A stretch of 64,000 bases of DNA, from contig NC_043019.1 of NCBI RefSeq assembly GCF_006345805.1, positions 1,612,001 through 1,676,000 of the forward strand. The letters run 5' to 3'. A model generated the notes under the pieces. The model saw only the letters and a list, made by a program, of their open reading frames with translations. It was not told where the DNA came from and ran no database searches. Positions 966 through 60,948 of this stretch are shown one piece after another. The stretch is from Octopus sinensis (Eukaryota). The translations under genes and the position numbers were made by a program. The first letter of the stretch is position 1, and the number at the start of each line of letters is the position of its first letter.

Positions 966-1587
966 CACCGATGGCGATGCAGTTTACTCCTAGGAGAGTT
1001 CTATTCTGGTTGGTCTGTATAACAAAAGTTAATCGACCAATGATCTCATATCTTTGCAGGCGTATTGCACTCAATTCTACAATTATTTAGTGTTTCTTTA
1101 TTCTTTATTCAACAGAATGTTGCTTGAGTAATACTTGATTGTTATTTCTGGCAGCTCATATGCAAGCGCTCATATGCATGCACCAATTTTGGCTCTTGTC
1201 AGTAATTTTCTAGTTTCGAAATAACATAATCTTCTGGTGAACAACTCATTCAAGGAAATAATTTAGTGAAATTCCAATGAATGTTTTCTATGGAAATGTA
1301 TTTCCTTAGTAATGCATGGAGCAGAAAGGAATAAGGAATAATAAGTTTCTTTCAAAGCTTTTAGCAAATGGTAAATACACAGTATCCATGTAAAGCAAAG
1401 AGATGGTGCGGCATTTAAACTATGGATTTTTATTGAAATTGTCTCAACAAGGCAGTACGCAGTAGAACCAATATTTATATAGTGCTCTGGGTGTACACTT
1501 TCTTATAGCAGAAACAGTAATTGATTACGTGACCAACAAATTGATTAGTTTTCATTGCCATTCATTGATTAATGTTATACTCAGTAC

Positions 1588-1745
1588 TAAGGCTGCGAGG
1601 TAGCAGAATCGTTAGCACACAGCGCAAAAAGCTTGGAGGCATTCAGTCCATCGTTACGTTCTTCTTGGAATTCCGACTTTTCATCCTTTCGAGGTCGATA
1701 TCATAACTGCCAATTGAGTAGCGTGGTCGATGTGAACTTGAACTT
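1588..1745 (+). mobile_element. SINE family B, degenerate copy
   Basis: aaggctgcgaggtagcagaatcgttagcac...tttcatcctttcgaggtcgata aligns to family B copies at 6898 and 7591. Confidence 0.6.
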
Positions 1746-1857
1746 GCTGGCCTTGTGCCGGTATTTGAAACCTATAATACACTCTGTATGTGCCTAACGG
1801 TTTCCTATAAAGCATATGTATATTGAGCTCTGACAACAGTTTATTAGTATTGCTATG

Positions 1858-1875
1858 CCTATATACGTACATACA

Positions 1876-1909
<34 letters not shown>

Positions 1910-1914
1910 CATAT

Positions 1915-1986
<72 letters not shown>
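1858..1986. repeat. (TACA)n/(TA)n compound microsatellite flanking the hammerhead array
   Basis: Direct reading of sequence. Confidence 0.95.
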
Positions 1987-1991
<5 letters not shown>

Positions 1992-2103
1992 TTGGCGCGC
2001 TGTTAGTTGGGGCATTTGAATTATAACGTCGGATGTAATCAATTGAACCACACGCGTATTTATCGTTATGGTAAAATCTAGCGTGTGATTGAGGGATTTC
2101 ATC

Positions 2104-2199
2104 CAGATAGTTTTGGCTGACGAGCTACAAGTGGATTTTTTTGTAAGTAAAATTACATTTAATTCATTAATAGCGAAACAATTGTCCCAAAATAATCTG
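2104..2199 (+). ncRNA. Type I hammerhead ribozyme, array unit 1; predicted GUC cleavage after 2186
   Basis: Stem I cagat-ag-ttttgg (2104-2116) / ccaaaa-ta-atctg (2187-2199); CUGACGA 2117-2123; stem II gcta/tagc extended by gtggatt/aattcat and tgtaa/ttaca; GAAA 2175-2178; C-AAUU-G; UC. Confidence 0.88.
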
Positions 2200-2632
2200 T
2201 ATTTTTGTTATTTTTTATTTGCCCTGTCCGTGTGAGCTAACAATTGTACTGACTTTCATGGGAACATGTATTTTTGTGGTTGAAACCTTTTGGATTACTG
2301 GTGCTAGAGTGAGCCATATAGTGACCACTCTCTTATATTTATTTTGTAAAAATATTATAATATATTATAAAATATTATAATAATCCAGGTTTCTCGGAGC
2401 ACTAGGCCACTTGGTGTTGAATAGATATACTATTAAATTAGTATCTAATTCTCTCACCCTTATTAATTAATTATAATTATGCTGCATTTATTTCTAAATG
2501 CTGTTTGTTTTCCGTGAAAGTTTGGCGCGCTGTTAGTTGGGGCATTTGAATTATAACGTCGGATGTAATCATTGAACCACACGCGTATTTATCGTTATGG
2601 TAAAATCTAGCGTGTGATTGAGGGATTTCATC

Positions 2633-2727
2633 CAGATAGTTTTGGCTGACGAGCTACAAGTGATTTTTTTGTAAGTAAAATTACATTTAATTCATTAATA
2701 GCGAAACAATTGTCCCAAAATAATCTG
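2633..2727 (+). ncRNA. Type I hammerhead ribozyme, array unit 2; predicted cleavage after 2714
   Basis: Same fold: CUGACGA 2646-2652, GAAAC-AAUU-GUC 2703-2714. Confidence 0.88.
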
Positions 2728-3162
2728 TATTTTTGTTATTTTTTATTTGCCCTGTCCGTGTGAGCTAACAATTGTACTGACTTTCATGGGAACATGTATT
2801 TTTGTGGTTGAAACCTTTTGGATTAACTGGTGCTAGAGTGAGCCATATAGTGACCACTCTCTTATATTTATTTTGTAAAAATATTATAATATATTATAAA
2901 ATATTATAATAATCCAGGTTTCTCGGAGCACTAGGCCACTGGTGTTGAATAGATATACTATTAAATTAGTATCTAATTCTCTCACCCTTATTAATTAATT
3001 ATAATTATGCTGCATTTATTTCTAAATGCTGTTTGTTTTCCGTGAAAGTTTGGCGCGCTGTTAGTTGGGGCATTTGAATTATAACGTCGGATGTAATCAA
3101 TTGAACCACACGCGTATTTATCGTTATGGTAAAATCTAGCGTGTGATTGAGTGGATTTCATC

Positions 3163-3258
3163 CAGATAGTTTTGGCTGACGAGCTACAAGTGGATTTTTT
3201 TGTAAGTAAAATTACATTTAATTCATTAATAGCGAAACAATTGTCCCAAAATAATCTG
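3163..3258 (+). ncRNA. Type I hammerhead ribozyme, array unit 3; predicted cleavage after 3245
   Basis: CUGACGA 3176-3182, GAAAC-AAUU-GUC 3234-3245, stem I intact. Confidence 0.88.
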
Positions 3259-3693
3259 TATTTTTGTTATTTTTTATTTGCCCTGTCCGTGTGAGCTAAC
3301 AATTGTACTGACTTTCATGGGAAACATGTATTTTTGTGGTTGAAACCTTTTGGATTAACTGGTGCTAGAGTGAGCCATATAGTGACCACTCTCTTATATT
3401 TATTTTGTAAAAATATATAATATATTATAAAATATTATAATAATCAGGTTTCTCGGAGCACTAGGCCACTTGGTGTGAATAGATATACTATTAATTAGTA
3501 TCTAATTCTCTCCACCCTTATTAATTAATTATATTATGCTGCATTTATTTCTAAATGCTGTATTTGTTTTCCGTGAAAGTTTGGCGCGCTGTTAGTTGGG
3601 GCATTTGAATTATAACGTCGGATGTAATCAATTGAACCACACGCGTATTTATCGTTATGGTAAAATCTAGCGTGTGATTGAGTGGATTTCATC

Positions 3694-3789
3694 CAGATAG
3701 TTTTGGCTGACGAGCTACAAGTGGATTTTTTTGTAAGTAAAATTACATTTAATTCATTAATAGCGAAACAATTGTCCCAAAATAATCTG
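3694..3789 (+). ncRNA. Type I hammerhead ribozyme, array unit 4; predicted cleavage after 3776
   Basis: CUGACGA 3707-3713, GAAAC-AAUU-GUC 3765-3776, stem I intact. Confidence 0.88.
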
Positions 3790-4214
3790 TATTTTTGTTA
3801 TTTTTTATTTGCCTGTCCGTGTGAGCTAACAATTGTACTGACTTTCATGGGAACATGTATTTTTGTGGTTGAAACCTTTTGGATTAACTGGTGCTAGAGT
3901 GAGCCATATAGTGACCACTCTCTTTATTATTTTGTAAAAATATTATAATATATTATAAAATATTATAATAATCCAGGTTTCTCGGAGCACTAGGCCACTG
4001 GTGTTGAATATATACTATTAAATTAGTATCTAATTCTCTCACCCTTATTATTAATTATAATTATGCTGCATTTTTTCTAATGCTGTTTGTTTTCCGTGAA
4101 AGTTTGGCGCGCTGTTAGTTGGGGCATTTGAATTATAACGTCGGATGTAATCATTGAACCACACGCGTATTTATCGTTATGGTAAAATCTAGCGTGTGAT
4201 TGAGTGATTTCATC

Positions 4215-4309
4215 CAGATAGTTTTGGCTGACGAGCTACAAGTGGATTTTTTTGTAAGTAAAATTACATTTAATTCATTAATAGCGAACAATTGTCCCAA
4301 AATAATCTG
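4215..4309 (+). ncRNA. Hammerhead of array unit 5 with GAAA reduced to GAA (inactive copy or consensus error)
   Basis: CUGACGA 4228-4234; tagcgaacaattgtc lacks one A relative to the other four units. Confidence 0.7.
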
Positions 4310-4603
4310 TATTTTTGTTATTTTTTATTGCCCTGTCCGTGTGAGCTAACATTGTACTGACTTTCATGGGAAACATGTATTTTTGTGGTTGAAACCTTTT
4401 GGATTAACTGGTGCTAGAGTGAGCCATATAGTGACCACTCTTATTTTATTTTGTAAAATATTATAATATATTATAAAATATTATAATAATCCAGGTTTCT
4501 CGGAGCACTAGGCCACTTGGTGTTGAATAGATATACACTATTAAATTAGTATCTAATTCTCTCACCCTTATTAATTAATTATATATATATATATATATAT
4601 ATA

Positions 4604-4793
4604 GGGAGAATTCACGAAAAAAATAAAAGACTAAGACAGGTGGCGTAGAAAACAAACAGATGTATTAGGTATAACGGTCGGGAATTGAAAAGGTCTACGT
4701 TTCGAGCCTACGCTCTTCCACAGAAAGGGACACAGAAGGAAACAAGGAGAGAAAAATATGTGTGCAGTGGCTAACGATCTATCATGGCGATTC

Positions 4794-4794
<1 letters not shown>
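4604..4794 (-). mobile_element. TA-flanked Penelope-pLTR-like element (family P1) with a variant hammerhead-like motif
   Basis: Shares acgtttcgagcctacgctc with 23830-24000 and (reverse complement) 60786-60905; minus strand reads CUGUGGA-A-GAGC-GUAG-GCUC-GAAACGUA. Confidence 0.6.
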
Positions 4795-4830
<36 letters not shown>

Positions 4831-5523
4831 TATCATATGAGAAAGAAAGAAAGAGAGAGAGAGAGAGAGTAAAGTGTACATAAAATATGTATTATAAAGC
4901 TCGATGATAGCCGTTAAAACACATTTGGAACAGGATTATCCAAACGGAACACGATTAGAATGTATTGTTTGGTTAGCTGATCTGATTGCAAACAATGCAG
5001 ATCCGAGTGCAATAATAGCATCTCGCACTGCAGCGTTTTATATTCCATATTTTTTCAGATTTCTATGATTTACGTTTCTAAAGAAATTTCTAAAATCAAT
5101 TTTCTTTGTTTCTATATTTTCTCCGCTTAAATCTAACCATAAATAATATATTCTTGTTTAGTTTTGCGATTGAAAATTTCCTATGTTCAAAACTTATATT
5201 TTAGAAGCATTTTAGGAAGAATGTAAAATGAGAAAATTGTTTCGCAGTTTGCATAATTCTAAACAGAAAATAGATGTTTGCGGAAAGTGAAAATGATGAA
5301 GGCGGTACAATTGCAGGGGATAATCAGGAGAATTTTATAACAGAGTCAGAATAAGCATCTCTTTAAGTGAAACAAATTGTTGAAACGAAAACGTTGGGTG
5401 CTTATTAGAGAAATCCGTCCAGAATAAATTATACTCTGCATAGTAATGTAAAAAGATATGTTGGTATGTTTTCTGAATTAAGCACATTATATGTAGATTA
5501 AATAGCTAAAATTAATTTTTGGA

Positions 5524-5956
5524 TCTTTTCGGTTTGAACGGTAGGTTTTTTTCTAGCGGTGTCATATGAAATTGTCACCCATAATTATTACCCTAGTATC
5601 GATCTATTGCATTTCAATCTTTTTTAGGATTAGGGTTAGGGTTAGGGTTAGGGTTAGGGTTAGGGGTTGGGGGAAGGGTATCTTTTTTCTTCACAAATGT
5701 AAATAAATCCAATCTGTTTCTTAAACGAGGGACATATTCATACTGCACAGAATGTTTTTTTACCTCAATAGACGTCAGTGATTGGTTGAAATTCCATAAA
5801 TTGAAGAAAAAACAACAAATATCTTACAAACTATAGAATTTTCTCAATAAAGCCAAGAGAAAAAGATGTTTTATAAACACATTCTACCAGTATACGAAGT
5901 TTAAAATTTTTTAGTTATCTAGAAATTGTTAAAAACTGCCGTTCAAGCAGAAAATA
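5524..5956. mobile_element. Non-autonomous DNA transposon (MITE-like) with imperfect TIRs and internal telomeric repeats
   Basis: Left tcttttcggtttgaacggtaggttttt vs right aaaaactgccgttcaagcagaaaata. Confidence 0.7.
5630..5665 (+). repeat. Interstitial telomeric repeat (TTAGGG)6
   Basis: Six perfect TTAGGG units preceded by TTAGGA. Confidence 0.95.
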
Positions 5957-7590: not shown

Positions 7591-8008
7591 AAGGCGGGGT
7601 GAGCTGGCAGAATCGTTAGCACGCCGGGCGAAATGCTTAGCGGTATTTCGTCTGCCGTTACGTTCTGAGTTCAAATTCGACCGAGGTCATCTTTGTCTTT
7701 CATCCTTTCGGGGTCAATAAATTAAGTACCAGTTACGCACTGGGGTCGATGTAATCGACATAATCCGCTTGTCTGTCCTTGTTTGTCATCTCTGTGTTTA
7801 GACCCTTGTGTGTAGTAAAGAAATAGGTATTTCGTCTGCCGTTACGTTCTGAGTTCAAATTCCGCCGAGGTCGACTTTGCCTTTCATCCTTTCGGGGTCG
7901 ATAAATTAAGTACCAGTTACGCACTGGGGTCGATGTAATCGACTTAATCCGCTTGTCTGTCCTTGTTTGATCTCTCTGTGTTTAGCCCCTTGTGGTAGTA
8001 AAGAAATA
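7591..8008 (+). mobile_element. SINE family B, head plus two tandem ~180-bp units
   Basis: Second unit restarts at ggtatttcgtctg (7826) immediately after aaagaaata. Confidence 0.9.
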
Positions 8009-9282: not shown

Positions 9283-9757
9283 AACATAACAAGGATGTTA
9301 ACGATCAAATGTTGCCTGTGCCCGAAGAATTTATAAATGTTGATTTATAAGAATTTATAAAGAGTTTATAAATGCCTTACACAAATCAAGCCCATTTTAT
9401 AATCATAGAATGAATTTCTTCCAACTGACGAACTACTCTCCATCATTGAATGCAAAAGGATTCGAAGGTATTACGTTAGTGCTTTCCTTTTCCTATAAAG
9501 ATGTCCAAAAAACAAAATATGGGTCTTTCATTCACAGGTATCTTATAGGCATGGCTTCTACTGAGTCCATCCACCAGGATCTCTATTATCATACTTGATA
9601 GGGCTGCTGGTGTAGTCCCCGTCAGCCCAAACATATGGCCACCAGGTGGAATCAAAAGTATTTTTTCCATATTTCAAACTTTAATTCATAGCTCAAACAA
9701 CTTACATATGAAAGCGTTTATTAATCAAAAAAATATATATGTATATATATATATATA

Positions 9758-9806
9758 GTAGTAGTGGTGGTGGTGGTAGTGGTGGTAGTGGTGGTGGTGG
9801 TAGTAA

Positions 9807-9843
<37 letters not shown>

Positions 9844-10040
9844 TGAAGCAGCAGTAATAGTAGTAGTTGGTGTAGTAATAGTAGTAGCTGGTGTTGTAGT
9901 AGTAGAAGTAGCTGGTGTAGTGGTAATAGTAGTAGCTGATATCGTTATAGTAGTAGTAGTAATAGTAGTAATAGTAGTAGTAGCAGCAGCAGCAGCACTA
10001 GTAGTAGTAGTAGTAGTAGTAGCAGCAGCAGCAGTTGGTG
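9758..10040. repeat. Compound trinucleotide microsatellite (GTA/GTG/GCA)n
   Basis: Direct reading; explains the poly-V and poly-L ORFs. Confidence 0.9.
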
Positions 10041-23829: not shown

Positions 23830-24000
23830 CAGTTAATCCAAACATGTAAGCACAAAAAAACACAACAACGCGAGGACGTGGAACAAGTATAGTATTATTG
23901 GACGCTCAGGAAAGAAGGAAAGAAGGAGGGTTTTACGTTTCGAGCCTACGCTCTTCAACAGAAAGATACACAGAAAAGAAACACGGGAAGAAACATACAC
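23830..24000 (-). mobile_element. Family P1-related Penelope-pLTR-like element
   Basis: cgctcagga...ttttacgtttcgagcctacgctcttcaacagaaaga; starts at a TA tract. Confidence 0.6.
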
Positions 24001-26094: not shown

Positions 26095-26489
26095 GTGAGA
26101 TACGGCGGCGAAATGCTTAGCAGCATTTCGTCTGCCGCTACGTTCTGAGTTCAAATTCCGCCGAGGTTGACTTTGCTTTTCATCCTTTCAGAGTCGATTA
26201 AATAAGTACCAGTTACGCACTGAGGTCGAAATAATCGACTTAATCCTTTTGTCTGTCTTTGTTTATTCCCTCTGTGTTTAGCCCCTTGTGGGTAGTAAAA
26301 AATGAGTATTTCGTCTGCCGCGACGTTCTGAGTTCAAATTCCGCCGAGGTCGACTTTGCCTTTCATCCTTTGGGGGTCGATTAAATAAGTACCAGTTACG
26401 CACTGGGGTCGATATAATCGACTTTATCCTTTTGTCTGTTCTTGTTTGTTCCCTCTGTGTTTAGCGCCTTGTGGGTAGTAAAGAAATAA
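26095..26489 (+). mobile_element. SINE family B dimer with internally deleted head; 15-bp TSD
   Basis: TSD gtattagtatttatg at 26080-26094 and 26490-26504; two tandem units. Confidence 0.9.
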
Positions 26490-28092
26490 GTATTAGTATT
26501 TATGTTGGGTTCAATGTAGTTTATTGCAAGATACCAGAATGGGGCGTGATATCAGTATTTCTGTCATAATTTAAACTGAAAACCATGGTGCTCTACAGGA
26601 TGGAGTCTATTGTTCTCTGGCGCATTCTTCCCTTTTCCTACGCTTTCCCAACCCTAAACAAGTACCACTGGGTATGTGACATCTTGCTTTGTCTACTTAT
26701 AGCAAATGTATATATTCCTCTATCTGTTTTGTTTCTGCGCCATTAACAGTGTAAAGCTACGAAACAACTTTGCGACTTTCATGTGCCTTGTGAGCCTGCA
26801 AGACGTTCCTAAGTCCTTCTAACCACACATTTCATCTCGTTGTCTTTACGCCGATACCGCTCCTGTTATAACACGAAGATACAACGAACTAGGGTTCAAC
26901 ACTATGGGTTTTCGCCTCTGAACATCACCTATACCTTTCTTAGAAACAACTGTTGGCTTACAAGTATGAGGTTGGTAATCTTGCAGTTTCAGTTTGTTAC
27001 ATTACTGCCAGGAGTTCTAAGCAAAAAGGGGGAAAAAAGCCTGAAGGATTTATCCCATGGGATACCGAGTATTTCTTTCCCATCGTTAGAGAATGCCTCC
27101 TTCAGCTTGCAAATGAAAAGCAACCCCATACTGGAGATGATCAATTATGTAGGATTCCTCCATACCTGTCGGTGAATACATTTTCAGACATGGAAAAGCC
27201 GTTTAGCTAAGCATAACTGTACCAGAACATTGATTTTTACAGCAGCTTTAGCTGTACGACTCTCATATCATTATGTTCTTCATAAACAACTTGGATGTTC
27301 GACACTTTAAGCGTGTGTGCAAATGTGATTTTAACAATTGATAAACAACTTCTAACGTCATACATGTAATTCATATTTTTTTTTAATTGAAATTAGTTTT
27401 ATTTTCTTATATACTAACGTGGGCGTACAATATTTTTTTCACATCTTTTGTGTATAACTTCTCTGTGGTGGTTTTCGATTTGATTTTTCTCTTTACAAGT
27501 TCATGTCTAGAAGTTTTGAAATCAATTTTTTTTATGAATTCACTGATAAAAAAAAACTGATTATATATTTAACAAAATACTTCAAGAGAAGACTTTCGAA
27601 AATCTTCGAAAAATTTCGTATGCGGATGTGTTTAAGAAAATATACAATATTTCATTTGGTTATTTAAGGCGGAGAGAGTTCTAAGCTTTAAGAAAAAAAA
27701 ATTATTTTAAAAATAGTTTCACAAGCTCAATAGCAAATAATAATAAGAAGAAGAAAAAAAGAAGAGAATGGGGGGAAATGGTGGAGGGGAGTGGAAAGAG
27801 GGGGAGAAGGAGTTAAGAGACATCAATATAATAGGTGCCCCCGTAATAAGTAACAGCTATAATATTCTGAACTGATCGTCAAATGAATTATAGCAAGATT
27901 ATAGCTGGGAAGAATAAAATTTGCATATGATATCGGTTTCAAACACTGGCATAAACCTATAATTTTCGGGGGCGGGGTAGGGAATTCGATTTCAGCATCT
28001 TTAGCATTCAGTTGGTACGTCTTTCATCAACTCCCAAAGGATAAAAGGCTAAGTCGAGCTTGGTGGCATCTGCAATCAGACCTTAAAAACAC

Positions 28093-46304: not shown

Positions 46305-46337
<33 letters not shown>

Positions 46338-46420
46338 AATATAGAATGAATTTTGTTTTTCAGAAAAAAAATTTCAACAAGAATCAGTAGCATATTAAAA
46401 TACCGTTAAAGGTTAAAATT

Positions 46421-46632
46421 ATAAACAATTTATAAAACAAGGGCAAAAGAAAAATTATTTCCATGCCACAATTTAAAAAACAAAGTTCTGTTGACTAGCT
46501 TCCCCGATTTCAGCACCACGTATATTTATAATCAGTGTATAATTATATGTGGAGATTGACGACTTAAAGTCTGTTATCAGCATATTGGCATGGAAATAAT
46601 TTTTCTTTTGCCCTTGTTTATAAGTTGGTTAT
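46421..46632. repeat. Foldback, family P4 copy 1
   Basis: tataaaacaagggcaaaagaaaaattatttccatgcca inverted at 46586-46622. Confidence 0.8.
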
Positions 46633-47438: not shown

Positions 47439-47869
47439 GTTATATTATTTTTTCAAAATTTTTTGCCCAAATTTATACTAGTACATTTTTATACCAATAA
47501 CGTTTTAAATACATACTATATGATTTTAAATAGCATCTATATCATTTGATTTACTACACTGAAATTAAACATTTTCTCTGACGAGTGGATATACTTCCTA
47601 ATTATGCTTATCAACTTTGGATCTCATTTCAAGTTATAGTTTAATCATGAAATGATCGTAAGATCTCTGAAATATTTTGTAAAAATCATAGTTGTATTTT
47701 ATGTTTATTTATTTATAACATATTGTTTATATTATAGACGTATCTCTACTGAGACTTTTGCGATACATTTTTTCCTAATTTTACTCTCTAATATATCTGT
47801 GTTTTTATGTACATAACTTTGCATACATTTTGTACGTGTGTCTTATGTATAAGTGTATGCGTGTTTGTG

Positions 47870-48630
47870 TGGGTTTTTGTGCGTGTGTGTATTTGTGTCT
47901 GTATGTGTTTTTGTGTGTGTTTGTGTGTATGTGTGTATTTGTGTGTATGTGTGTGTTTGTGTGTATGTGTGTGTTTGTGTGTATGTGTGTGTTTGTGTGT
48001 ATGTGTGTGTTTGTGTGTATGTGTGTGTTTGTGTGTATGTGTGTGTTTGTGTGTATGTGTGTGTTTGTGTGTATGTGTGTGTTTGTGTGTATGTGTGTGT
48101 TTGTGTGTATGCGTGTGTTTGTGTGTATGTGTGTGTTGTGTGTATGTGTGTGTTTGTGTGTATGTGTGTGTTTGTGTGTATGTGTGTGTTGTGTGTATGC
48201 GTGTGTTGTGTGTATGTGTGTGTTGTGTGTATGCGTGTGTTTGTGTGTATGTGTGTGTTTGTGTGTATGGTGTGTTTTGTGTGTATTGTGTGTTTGTGTG
48301 TATGTGTTGTGTTTTGTGTGTATGTGTGTATTTGTGTGTATGTGTGTGTTTGTGTGTATGTGTGTGTTTGTGTGTATGTGTGTGTTTGTGTGTATGTGTG
48401 TGTTTGTGTGTATGTGTGTGTTTGTGTGTATGCGTGTGTTTGTGTGTATGTGTGTGTTTTGTGTATGTGTGTGTTTGTGTGTATGTGTGTATTTGTGTGT
48501 ATGTGTGTGTTTGTGTGTATGTGTGTATTTGTGTTTTTGTGTGTGCTTGTGTGTATGTGTGTGTTTGTGTGTATGTGCCTGTATGTGTTTTTGTGTGTGT
48601 TTGTCTGTATGTGTGTGTTTGTGTGTGTGG
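47870..48630. repeat. 18-bp minisatellite (tgtgtgtttgtgtgtatg)n derived from TG repeats
   Basis: About 40 units with a long homogeneous run at about 47940-48130. Confidence 0.9.
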
Positions 48631-52955: not shown

Positions 52956-53825
52956 TATATATGACCAATGATCCTCTGTCTGGGCCTTTCGCGGTATGAA
53001 GCGTAAATAAATATTCTTCGAAACGAAAGACCCGGAGGAAAATATGGCGTGAAATAGGAAATGGGTATCACTGAACAATTAGCGGCAGAGAGAGAAGGAA
53101 CCATGTGGAAAACATTTTATGCGACATAGCATACATCAACTAGCTCATTAAACCCTTTTGCTCGAAATATTGGACATAGTTTATAATTAATTTTGATCTC
53201 ATCTGCAACTTAATAGTAGTCGTGTAATTATTCTAAATTGAATACATTATTGCGTAAATCACAGTTATAATTGAATTGCTAAATTAATATTCATGCATTA
53301 TAATCTTGCCTAATCTGGTGCCTTATACGATTAACATCTCCTAATAAATTATATCTAATATCTTTCTATTAACATCTTAACTCTTGTAAGCCCGGTACGT
53401 TTCATCTTAATCTGATAGGCGTGCAGCTATCGCAGACCGCACATGGGTTGCATTAAATTTAAACACAGGAATCTTATTGTTCTTAATCATAGCTACTACA
53501 CAAACCACAAATACAACATGCAGATAATTAATCTTATTTACACATACCGTTTCACAAATCTTTCCAATCCCAACAATACATCTTATATAAGAAATTCTAA
53601 TACAAAACGACTATTTGGAGCGAAAATATATGCTCTAAAAACCCAAAAATGAGTTACCTAACCAATAGTAACACAGTCCTTTTTTCCATAAAGCACAAAG
53701 GAAGCTCAAAATAGTATAAGACAGTTAAAAGAGGACTAGATTTAACATATGGAGATGACTAACTTGTCTTATAAACCTTGTCTGCAAGCGAAACTTATGA
53801 ATTGTCTATAACAAAAATAATACCT

Positions 53826-54247
53826 ATTCCTTTGCTACTCACCAGGGGCTAAACATAGAGGAGACAAACAAGGACAGACAAATGGAGTAAGTCGATTATA
53901 TCGACGCCAGTGCTTAACTGGTACTTATTTAATCGACCCCGAAAGGATGAAAGGCAAAGTCGACCTCGGCGGAATTTGAACTCAGAACGTAGCGGCAGAC
54001 GAAATACCTATTTCTTTATTACCCACAAGGGGCTAAACATAGAGTGGACAAACAGGGAGAGACATAGGTATTAAGTCGATTACATCGACCACAGTGTGAA
54101 ACTGGTGCTTAATTTATCGACCCCGAAAGGATGAAAGGCAAAGTCGACCTCGGCGGAATTTGAACTCACAACGTAGCGGCAGACGAAATACCGCTAAGCA
54201 TTTCGCCCGGCGCGCTGAAGTTTCTGCCAGTTCGCCGCTATTCTACT
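53826..54247 (-). mobile_element. SINE family B dimer, 15-bp TSD
   Basis: TSD acaaaaataatacct at 53811-53825 and 54248-54262. Confidence 0.92.
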
Positions 54248-57744: not shown

Positions 57745-57911
57745 TAATATATATATATATATATTATATATATATATATTATATATATATATATATATAT
57801 AATATATATATATAGATATATATATAACTAATGTAGGATAAAAATTTTTTCGAAAAAAAATGTTATCAATGGCCAGCATATCAAAAATACCTTTAAAGGT
57901 TAAAATTATAA

Positions 57912-58355
57912 ATAACTTATAAAATAAGTGCAAAAGAAAAATTCTAATTCCAAATATACCGAAAAAAGACACAAGCCAATAGAAATTTCTAAAAAGTTCC
58001 GTTATTAACGTATTGGTTCCAAGTTCGTATCACACGTGTCTCGAGATGTGCTGAGGATTTTCTATTTTGGATATATTTGGGGTACTTAGGTCTGCTCTGC
58101 TCAGGACTCATTGCTTGCTTTTTCCATGGGTATGAGTAAGTATTTCATTTATGTCTTACGTATTTATCGCTGAGGAGGGGAAAGTTCTTTTAAATTAACC
58201 CCGAAATTGGGATCAATACGGTAATAACGGAATTTTTTAGAAATTTCTATCGGCTTGTTTCGAGACGCATAAATTATAAGGGTTATTGAGAATTTTGTCT
58301 TTTTTCGGCATATTTGGCATTAGAATTTTTCTTTTGCCCTTATTTTATAAGTTAT
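57912..58355. repeat. Foldback, family P4 copy 2
   Basis: ataacttataaaataag.gcaaaagaaaaattctaat...ttccgttatta.cgtattg mirrored; right arm has about 40 extra nt; shares upstream aaaatacc.ttaaaggttaaaattataaa with 46400. Confidence 0.82.
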
Positions 58356-60520: not shown

Positions 60521-60786
60521 AGGCGTGTAGCTGAGTGGTTGGGGTATTCGGGTAACGATTCTAACGTCGTGAGTTCAATTCCCACGCGTTATGTCCTTAA
60601 ACAAGACATTTTATTTCACGTTGCTCCAGTTCAGTCAGTTGGGAAAAATGAGTAGTACCTTTATTCCAAAGGACCAGCCTTGAAGCCCTCTGATTCACAT
60701 TCAATCTCCCTCAGGACTACGTTATAAGTATACGTGTCTGTAGAGTGCTCAGCCTCATGCACGTTAATTTCACGAGCGGGATGTTG
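60521..60786 (+). mobile_element. Old chimeric SINE: family D head plus family A tail
   Basis: Family D domain aagacattttatttcacgttgctccagttcagtcag, then family A tail gtacct.tattccaaagg.ccagccttg...gagtgctcagcc...acgttaatttcacgagc. Confidence 0.65.
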
Positions 60787-60903
60787 AGCGTAGGCTCGAA
60801 ACGTAAAAGACTTTTTCTATTCCTGAGCGCTATACTAATACATATGTTTGTATGTACACCACCTGCCTTCGTCTTTTGTTTATTTTCGTAAACTTTCCTT
60901 TTT

Positions 60904-60905
<2 letters not shown>
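60786..60905 (+). mobile_element. Family P1 fragment ending in (TA)n
   Basis: Reverse complement aligns with 4604-4715. Confidence 0.65.

Positions 60906-60948
<43 letters not shown>

Follow-up and report, generated by a model that had tools for sequence, protein, structure and literature searches.

A tandem array of ~531-bp units within a (TA)n microsatellite

We analyzed a 64,000-nucleotide (nt) stretch of the Octopus sinensis genome (assembly GCF_006345805.1, contig NC_043019.1, forward-strand positions 1,612,001 to 1,676,000; here called the window and numbered from its first letter), near the start of which lies a tandem array whose units carry a type I hammerhead ribozyme motif. By direct reading of positions 1500-5200, we found that the array occupies 1987-4582 on the + strand and consists of 4.9 head-to-tail copies of a ~531-bp unit, for a total of ~2.6 kb. 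The anchor sequence AAAGTTTGGCGCGCTG occurs at 1987, 2517, 3045, 3576, and 4099 and delimits five units, at 1987-2516, 2517-3044, 3045-3575, 3576-4098, and 4099-4582, with lengths of 530, 528, 531, 523, and 484 bp, respectively. The final unit is ~45 nt short of full length and ends at ...ATTAATTAATTATA. Neither end of the array is in register with the predicted site of ribozyme cleavage. A preliminary description of this stretch had reported a tandem array of ~530-bp units, each with a type I hammerhead; the anchors, the CTGACGA positions, and the descriptor search given below all agree with it.

The majority consensus unit is 531 bp long, has a GC content of 32 %, and is noncoding. In BLAST comparisons, the units were 97.4-99.2 % identical to unit 2, and no further copies were found elsewhere in the 64-kb window, where the array is the only locus. 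A gapless repeat finder also picked up a periodicity of 518-532 bp. The array was not listed in a Tandem Repeats Finder scan of the window, because the longest period considered by that program is 500 and the period of the array exceeds this value. We also noted that the hexamer CAATTG occurs three times per unit, at consensus positions 54, 193, and 255 (for example, at window positions 2040-2045, 2179-2184, and 2241-2246).

The unit has no recognizable coding capacity. The longest stop-free frame in a trimer of the consensus is 86 amino acids, a HMMER search with the + strand frame that spans the hammerhead found no relative among 1.84 billion representative proteins, and a word-indexed protein search with the - strand frame found none either. 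Exact look-ups of two open reading frames (ORFs) that lie within the unit gave no match, and no copies of the unit turned up in metagenome contigs, which were scanned for exact 28-mers and 22-mers, or in viral contigs, which were scanned for a 19-mer. The array is uniform from unit to unit and lacks terminal repeats or a long terminal repeat (LTR); the purine runs of the unit are all shorter than 8 nt, so that it has no polypurine tract (PPT). A GC-rich octamer, TGGCGCGC, is found at 1993-2000 and at the equivalent positions of the other units, 6 nt from the 5' boundary of the array in an otherwise AT-rich unit. This octamer would complement a tRNA-like 3' end, ...GCGCGCCA, and is the sole tRNA-end-like string in the unit; it is too short for a primer binding site (PBS) to be called.

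When the units were aligned to the majority consensus, we counted 28 indel events, 20 of which are changes in homopolymer length, with deletions outnumbering insertions 21 to 7. Eight apparent substitutions among the units lie nearly all beside indels and are alignment artifacts, leaving at most one or two real substitutions. This ratio of ~28 indels to one or two substitutions points to long-read consensus error rather than divergence, so the units are probably identical in reality. The preliminary description had treated unit 5 as in need of repair; this unit does read GAAC at the site, but the missing A looks like a long-read indel error, and the defect is probably an artifact of assembly. 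The pattern also points to a long-read assembly that was not fully polished as the source of the window, and small frameshifts or apparent defects elsewhere in it should be read accordingly. One difference appears to be genuine, a block-like variant that reads GAGGGATT in units 1 and 2 and GAGTG(G)ATT in units 3 to 5, and it provides mild evidence for some duplication at the DNA level or for more than one template. The near-identity of the units makes the array either very young or the product of one event, and the scarcity of substitutions among them is in line with the earlier proposal of a young family.

Both ends of the array lie in simple sequence. A (TACA)n/(TA)n microsatellite at 1860-1986 abuts unit 1, and a (TA)n microsatellite at 4583-4603 follows the last unit, with up to 4 nt (TATA) at the 3' junction assignable to either element or target. 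No target-site duplication (TSD) can be defined, because the array ends lie inside the microsatellite. The window contains 92 pure (TA) tracts of at least six repeats, which cover 4.5 % of it; (TA)n tracts touch 5.4 % of window positions, and only 0.3-0.4 % of random 2.6-kb segments have both ends in such a tract. Insertion at microsatellites is known from the Penelope-like elements (PLEs), where the Neptune clade has a microsatellite bias and the Naiad clade, which occurs in Octopus spp. and lacks canonical hammerheads, has a bias for (TA)n and presents the same difficulty in defining target sites (PMC8557442).

The hammerhead motif and its predicted structure

Each unit contains, in order, CAGAUAGUUUUGG, CUGACGA, a 51-nt hairpin closed by GCUA...UAGC, GAAA, CAAUUG, U, and C, followed by CCAAAAUAAUCUG. 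CTGACGA starts at 2117, 2646, 3176, 3707, and 4228 in units 1 to 5, and GCGAAACAATTGTC ends at 2186, 2714, 3245, and 3776 in units 1 to 4, while unit 5 has GCGAACAATTGTC in its place, ending at 4296. In the first hammerhead (2104-2199, + strand), the 5' strand of helix I at 2104-2116 is followed by the core CUGACGA at 2117-2123, the helix II hairpin at 2124-2174, GAAA at 2175-2178, helix III (ACAAUUGU) at 2178-2185, C17 at 2186, and the 3' strand of helix I at 2187-2199, with cleavage predicted after 2186. Hammerheads 3 (3163-3258) and 4 (3694-3789), also on the + strand, have the same sequence as hammerhead 1 and predicted cuts after 3245 and 3776, respectively. The helix II hairpin of hammerhead 2 (2633-2727, +) is one G shorter, and its cut is predicted after 2714. 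In hammerhead 5 (4215-4309, +), GAAA is read as GAA, one A short at 4286-4288, and cleavage would occur after 4296 if the core is intact. The cut sites given in the preliminary description (2186, 2714, 3245, and 3776, plus 4296 in unit 5) are correct by these motif positions, as is the arithmetic behind its predicted monomers of 528, 531, 531, and 520 nt.

All 11 conserved core positions are present, C3-A9, G12-A14, and C17 among them, as are the G10.1-C11.1 and A15.1-U16.1 pairs and a GUC site, and the core is complete in at least four units, units 1 to 4. Helix I is open-ended and consists of 7 bp, an A.A mismatch, and 5 bp (13 nt). Helix II begins with 4 bp and continues through a 2x2 internal loop into an extended hairpin; it is 51 nt long and has a folding energy of -12.6 kcal/mol. 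Helix III has 2 bp capped by the tetraloop AAUU, and ACAAUUGU is a perfect palindrome. With helix I open and helices II and III closed by loops, the topology is that of a type I hammerhead.

We searched both strands of the window with a descriptor of the hammerhead (CUGANGA, helix II of at least 3 bp, GAAA, helix III of at least 2 bp, UH, and helix I of at least 5 bp), which matched units 1 to 4 of the array and found no match in 100 dinucleotide-preserving shuffles of the whole window. In a search of 126 nt, the full Rfam model RF00163 (Hammerhead_1, model positions 1-45) aligned to 2111-2192 on the + strand with a score of 30.0 bits and an E value of 4.4e-6, which becomes ~2e-3 when scaled from 126 nt to the window. 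A 39-nt insertion in loop II is the main cost to this score, and unit 5, with GAA for GAAA, scored 22.4 bits. Rfam searches of the whole window at gathering thresholds and of 2.8 kb at E <= 10 reported no hammerhead, because of speed filters; the match surfaces in the 126-nt search. On the - strand, neither the descriptor nor Rfam identified a ribozyme, and the unit had no match to any other Rfam family. The case for a hammerhead is built from its complete core, the extra pairing beyond the Rfam model, and the tandem-repeat setting.

Folding predictions distinguish the two strands. In the 106-nt hammerhead region, helices I and II fold as expected, with a z score of -4.63, and the linear unit folds with a z score of -5.95. 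As a circle, the 531-nt consensus monomer has a predicted energy of -142.2 kcal/mol on the + strand (z score of -6.55, 67 % paired) and -104.1 kcal/mol on the - strand (z score of -4.35). The stronger + strand fold is consistent with the + strand being the functional RNA.

The preliminary description had also noted that minimal type I hammerheads with a palindromic loop III act as dimers. A Forster-type double hammerhead, in which helices I and III form between two units, evaluates to -54.6 kcal/mol, lower than the -43.4 kcal/mol of two single hammerheads, so that dimer action is plausible; RNAcofold by itself did not favor the double hammerhead over alternative folds. Dimer action is not required, however, since a tetraloop-capped helix III of 2 bp is what invertebrate hammerheads usually have, those of invertebrate retrozymes generally cleave efficiently on their own, and dimer dependence belongs to the amphibian type with a 1-bp helix III (PMC7229834; PMC4209133). 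The 8-nt palindrome ACAATTGT occurs twice per unit, once in helix III and again 62 nt downstream, within GAGCTAACAATTGTAC. The second copy might pair with or mask helix III in a circle. We considered whether this second ACAAUUGU could stand in cis for a second hammerhead and rejected the idea, since the bases that follow the palindrome do not allow pairing with the 5' strand of helix I.

The array as a candidate non-LTR retrozyme

The array has all of the defining retrozyme features that can be judged from sequence: a type I hammerhead, head-to-tail multimers, low GC, a monomer predicted to be highly self-paired, and no ORF, LTR, PBS, or PPT. Its noncoding unit, at 32 % GC, falls below the limit of 45-50 % that we used for the class. 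Metazoan non-LTR retrozymes such as those of mussel, the coral Acropora millepora, and axolotl likewise have one type I hammerhead per unit in head-to-tail multimers, low GC, a self-paired monomer, a ribozyme in one polarity, and no ORF, LTR, PBS, or PPT (PMC7229834). The array also shares its helix III of 2 bp plus a tetraloop with invertebrate retrozymes and with the axolotl hammerhead HHR_Amex2 (PMC7229834), and molluscs are already represented in the class by the retrozymes of Mytilus galloprovincialis (Cervera & de la Pena 2020, PMC7229834). On these grounds, we consider it quite probable that the array is a genomic copy of a nonautonomous, metazoan-type non-LTR retrozyme with one type I hammerhead per ~531-nt unit of + transcript. 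This assignment is in line with the retrozyme-like reading of the preliminary description, which gains support from the core and helices, the restriction of the motif to the + strand, the lack of ORF, LTR, and PPT, the low GC, the self-pairing, and the near-identical copies.

Several features set the array apart from known metazoan retrozymes. Its unit of 531 bp exceeds the 170-400 nt reported in PMC7229834, its helix II is a 51-nt extended hairpin instead of ~4 bp plus a loop, and both of its ends lie in a (TA)n microsatellite. The preliminary description had called the unit longer than the few-hundred-nt units of animal retrozymes; it is not unusually long, since consensus sequences of non-LTR retrozymes have been published at lengths from 51 to 972 bp, and those of ray-finned fishes average 650 bp (10.64898/2026.07.22.740005). 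In the same survey, 75 % of non-LTR retrozyme families have at most seven repeats, and an origin from the pseudo-LTRs (pLTRs) of PLEs is proposed (10.64898/2026.07.22.740005).

By analogy with the life cycle published for the class, which runs through circular RNA (circRNA), ligation by RtcB, and reverse transcription (PMC7229834), transcripts of the array would self-cleave and give rise to circRNA, and the element would be mobile. A multimeric + strand transcript would be made, with RNA polymerase II (Pol II) a likelier polymerase than Pol III on account of the four runs of T >= 5 in every unit; for the same reason, we judged Pol III transcription from an upstream sequence resembling a short interspersed nuclear element (SINE) to be unlikely. 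The multimer would then cleave itself after each GUC (C17), with its hammerheads acting singly or with neighboring units joined through the palindrome ACAAUUGU into double hammerheads. The monomers released would be ~531 nt long and would carry a 5'-OH and a 2',3'-cyclic phosphate at their ends. A host tRNA ligase of the RtcB type would circularize these monomers, with a predicted circular junction within one unit of ...CAAUUGUC joined to CCAAAAUAAUCUG..., i.e., ...GAAACAAUUGUC|CCAAAAUAAUCUG.... The circle would be copied by the reverse transcriptase (RT) of an autonomous non-LTR element, most likely a PLE, primed from a nick in the (TA)n target. Several rounds of copying around the circle would give a tandem cDNA with a non-integer number of units and ends out of phase with the cut site, as in the array.

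A number of findings weigh against this assignment. The RF00163 score lies 4 bits below the gathering score of 34, so the Rfam check suggested by the preliminary description yields a full-length alignment that does not reach the threshold, and a 30-bit match alone is not significant at the scale of a multigigabase genome. Helix II is unusually long. The five copies, identical in their helices within the window, amount to one independent occurrence from a single locus. The block-like difference between units 1-2 and units 3-5 is more readily explained by duplication of DNA than by one template copied once in rolling-circle fashion. The minimum free energy (MFE) fold of the hammerhead region pairs the core GACGA with UUGUC, at -27.3 kcal/mol compared to -21.7 kcal/mol for the hammerhead secondary structure, a comparison made with nearest-neighbor energy models that ignore the tertiary contacts of the hammerhead core. 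Finally, the window has no RT or GIY-YIG remnant, as judged from a Pfam scan that covered its ten longest frames only, and no match to the minimal hammerhead of the PLE type.

The low score, the single independent occurrence, and an MFE fold that disrupts both core and helix III are what would be expected of a chance hammerhead look-alike, without ribozyme activity, in an ordinary AT-rich minisatellite. We regard such a coincidence as very improbable. All 11 core positions, three helices in the right order, and the helix III palindrome typical of metazoans are present together, and none of the 100 shuffles yielded a descriptor match. The Rfam alignment spans the full length of the model, and its score is under the gathering value because of the long helix II insertion. 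Moreover, a tandem, low-GC, noncoding setting is where such ribozymes are known (PMC7229834).

The block-like variant bears instead on how the array was built. Stepwise duplication is expected to leave a difference of this kind between units 1-2 and 3-5, and both this variant and the presence of a single locus in 64 kb would fit a local minisatellite, in which one PLE pLTR or solo retrozyme monomer inserted in (TA)n and was then amplified by unequal crossover or replication slippage, with no need to be mobile; a route from pLTR to tandem repeat has been proposed in a 2026 preprint (10.64898/2026.07.22.740005). This origin, the main alternative, seems unlikely to us, as the near-absence of substitutions among the five units demands very recent duplications and the strong, + strand-specific self-pairing of the monomer is left unexplained. 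It would also keep the element in the same family, since it concerns only the way in which the array was built.

The relationship of retrozymes to PLEs raises another alternative. PLEs are the proposed RT donors for animal retrozymes, and the pLTR hammerheads of PLEs (Cervera & de la Pena 2014, PMC4209133) resemble those of the array in their type I topology and tandem arrangement, while the (TA)n-targeting PLE clades Naiad and Neptune share its insertion bias for microsatellites (Craig et al. 2021, PMC8557442). The array could then be the tandem remnant of an autonomous PLE, with its pLTRs in partial tandem and its coding part deleted, given that partial tandems and type I hammerheads within pLTRs are both known from PLEs (PMC8557442, PMC4209133) and that retrozymes are phylogenetically sister to pLTRs (10.64898/2026.07.22.740005). 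Unlike PLEs, however, the array has no RT/GIY-YIG ORF, and no coding remnant of this type was seen in or beside it in the ORF listing or in the Pfam scan of the window's ten longest frames. Its five ~531-bp units are uniform and follow one another without an internal region, and its helix III is canonical, whereas PLE hammerheads are mostly minimal, without a helix III loop (PMC4209133). We therefore give little credence to a PLE remnant and retain the non-LTR retrozyme as the best explanation.

The array can also be compared with other hammerhead-bearing repeats. Newt satellite 2 (~330 bp) is likewise a tandem repeat of several hundred base pairs, and its monomers are transcribed and self-cleaving. 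A hammerhead satellite of cave crickets, pDo500, was reportedly found by Rojas et al. in 2000 to have a repeat of ~500 bp. Such satellites are high-copy DNAs in long arrays, in contrast to the 4.9 units at one locus in the window. The weak palindromic helix III of the array, which permits a double hammerhead, is a feature of hammerhead satellites as well (Forster et al. 1988, as cited in PMC4209133). Plant LTR retrozymes are similarly nonautonomous and flanked by hammerheads, and they pass through a circRNA that is 600-1000 nt long (Cervera et al. 2016, PMC4918200). They are defined by type III hammerheads in LTRs, a PBS, a PPT, a GC content of >55 %, and 4-bp TSDs (PMC4918200), none of which is found in the array; with a type I hammerhead, no LTR or PPT, and 32 % GC, it does not belong to that group.

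Neighboring repeats and implications for cephalopod retroelements

Further repeats lie elsewhere in the window. We found no ORF longer than 280 amino acids in it, the longest ORFs being translations of microsatellites, and the ten longest nonrepetitive frames contained no Pfam domain, with no RT or GIY-YIG remnant among them. ARAGORN predicted no tRNAs in the window.

Directly downstream of the array, a 190-bp segment (4604-4793) is likewise bounded by a (TA)n tract on either side. Partial relatives of this segment occur at 60786-60898 (- strand, beside the (TA)n tract at 60903-60947) and at 23934-23997, and it represents another small repeat family that is associated with TA microsatellites. 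A ~184-bp SINE-like element is present three times as an exact 2.0-copy tandem dimer (7642-8008, 26125-26494, and 53819-54192), in both orientations and with halves that match at 87-94 %. Degraded single copies of this element occur at ~1590-1740 and elsewhere, one of them ~250 bp upstream of the array. The window also contains an interstitial telomere-type repeat, (TTAGGG)7, at 5624-5665, a (TAG)89 microsatellite at 9756-10022, and a 43-copy, 18-bp GT-rich minisatellite at 47853-48626.

A second, unrelated type I hammerhead-like motif (58164-58224, + strand) is found within a 526-bp element at 57827-58352, which lies between (TA)n and (TATG)n and folds as a near-perfect rod (-191 kcal/mol; z score of -14.3). 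The motif reads UUAUCG CUGAGGA GGGG..CCCC GAAA UUGG-GAUC?-CAAU A|CGGUAA, with a helix III of 4 bp and a helix I of 6 bp, an internal loop, and 3 bp. It was matched by the descriptor (with no match in 100 shuffles), and Rfam reported no hammerhead there even in a 200-nt search. The element may be a solo retrozyme, an inverted-repeat insertion derived from a PLE, or a foldback element that carries the motif by coincidence. A shorter relative at 46334-46630 has ~125 nt in common with it at the 5' end (82 % identity) and ~35 nt at the 3' end; a subterminal inverted repeat is present in each of the two. This relative lacks the hammerhead-like segment, so that the family is defined by its termini; it is flanked by (TA)n on both sides, and (TA)n is apparently the target of this family as well.

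The current picture of the retrozyme class is unchanged by the octopus array, whose standout features are its long helix II hairpin and its clean insertion in (TA)n. In the library that we could search, no paper links hammerheads or retrozymes with cephalopods beyond passing mention, so a retrozyme family from this group would be a new record; the preliminary description likewise knew of no account of such an element in octopus. A more specific proposal, that the array belongs to the first retrozyme family from a cephalopod and was mobilized by a (TA)n-targeting PLE such as the Naiads, is speculative, and we think it rather improbable. If true, it would mean that hammerhead circRNA elements parasitize PLE machinery independently of a ribozyme in the autonomous partner; the use of PLE machinery by hammerhead elements whose partner has no ribozyme is a possibility on which Craig et al. 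have speculated (PMC8557442). If the retrozyme assignment is confirmed, a cephalopod lineage would be added to the taxa with ribozyme-processed circRNA retroelements. The locus would then offer a clean, young multimer with junctions in (TA)n that could be used to ask which RT and endonuclease mobilize animal retrozymes and whether their arrays arise by rolling-circle reverse transcription.

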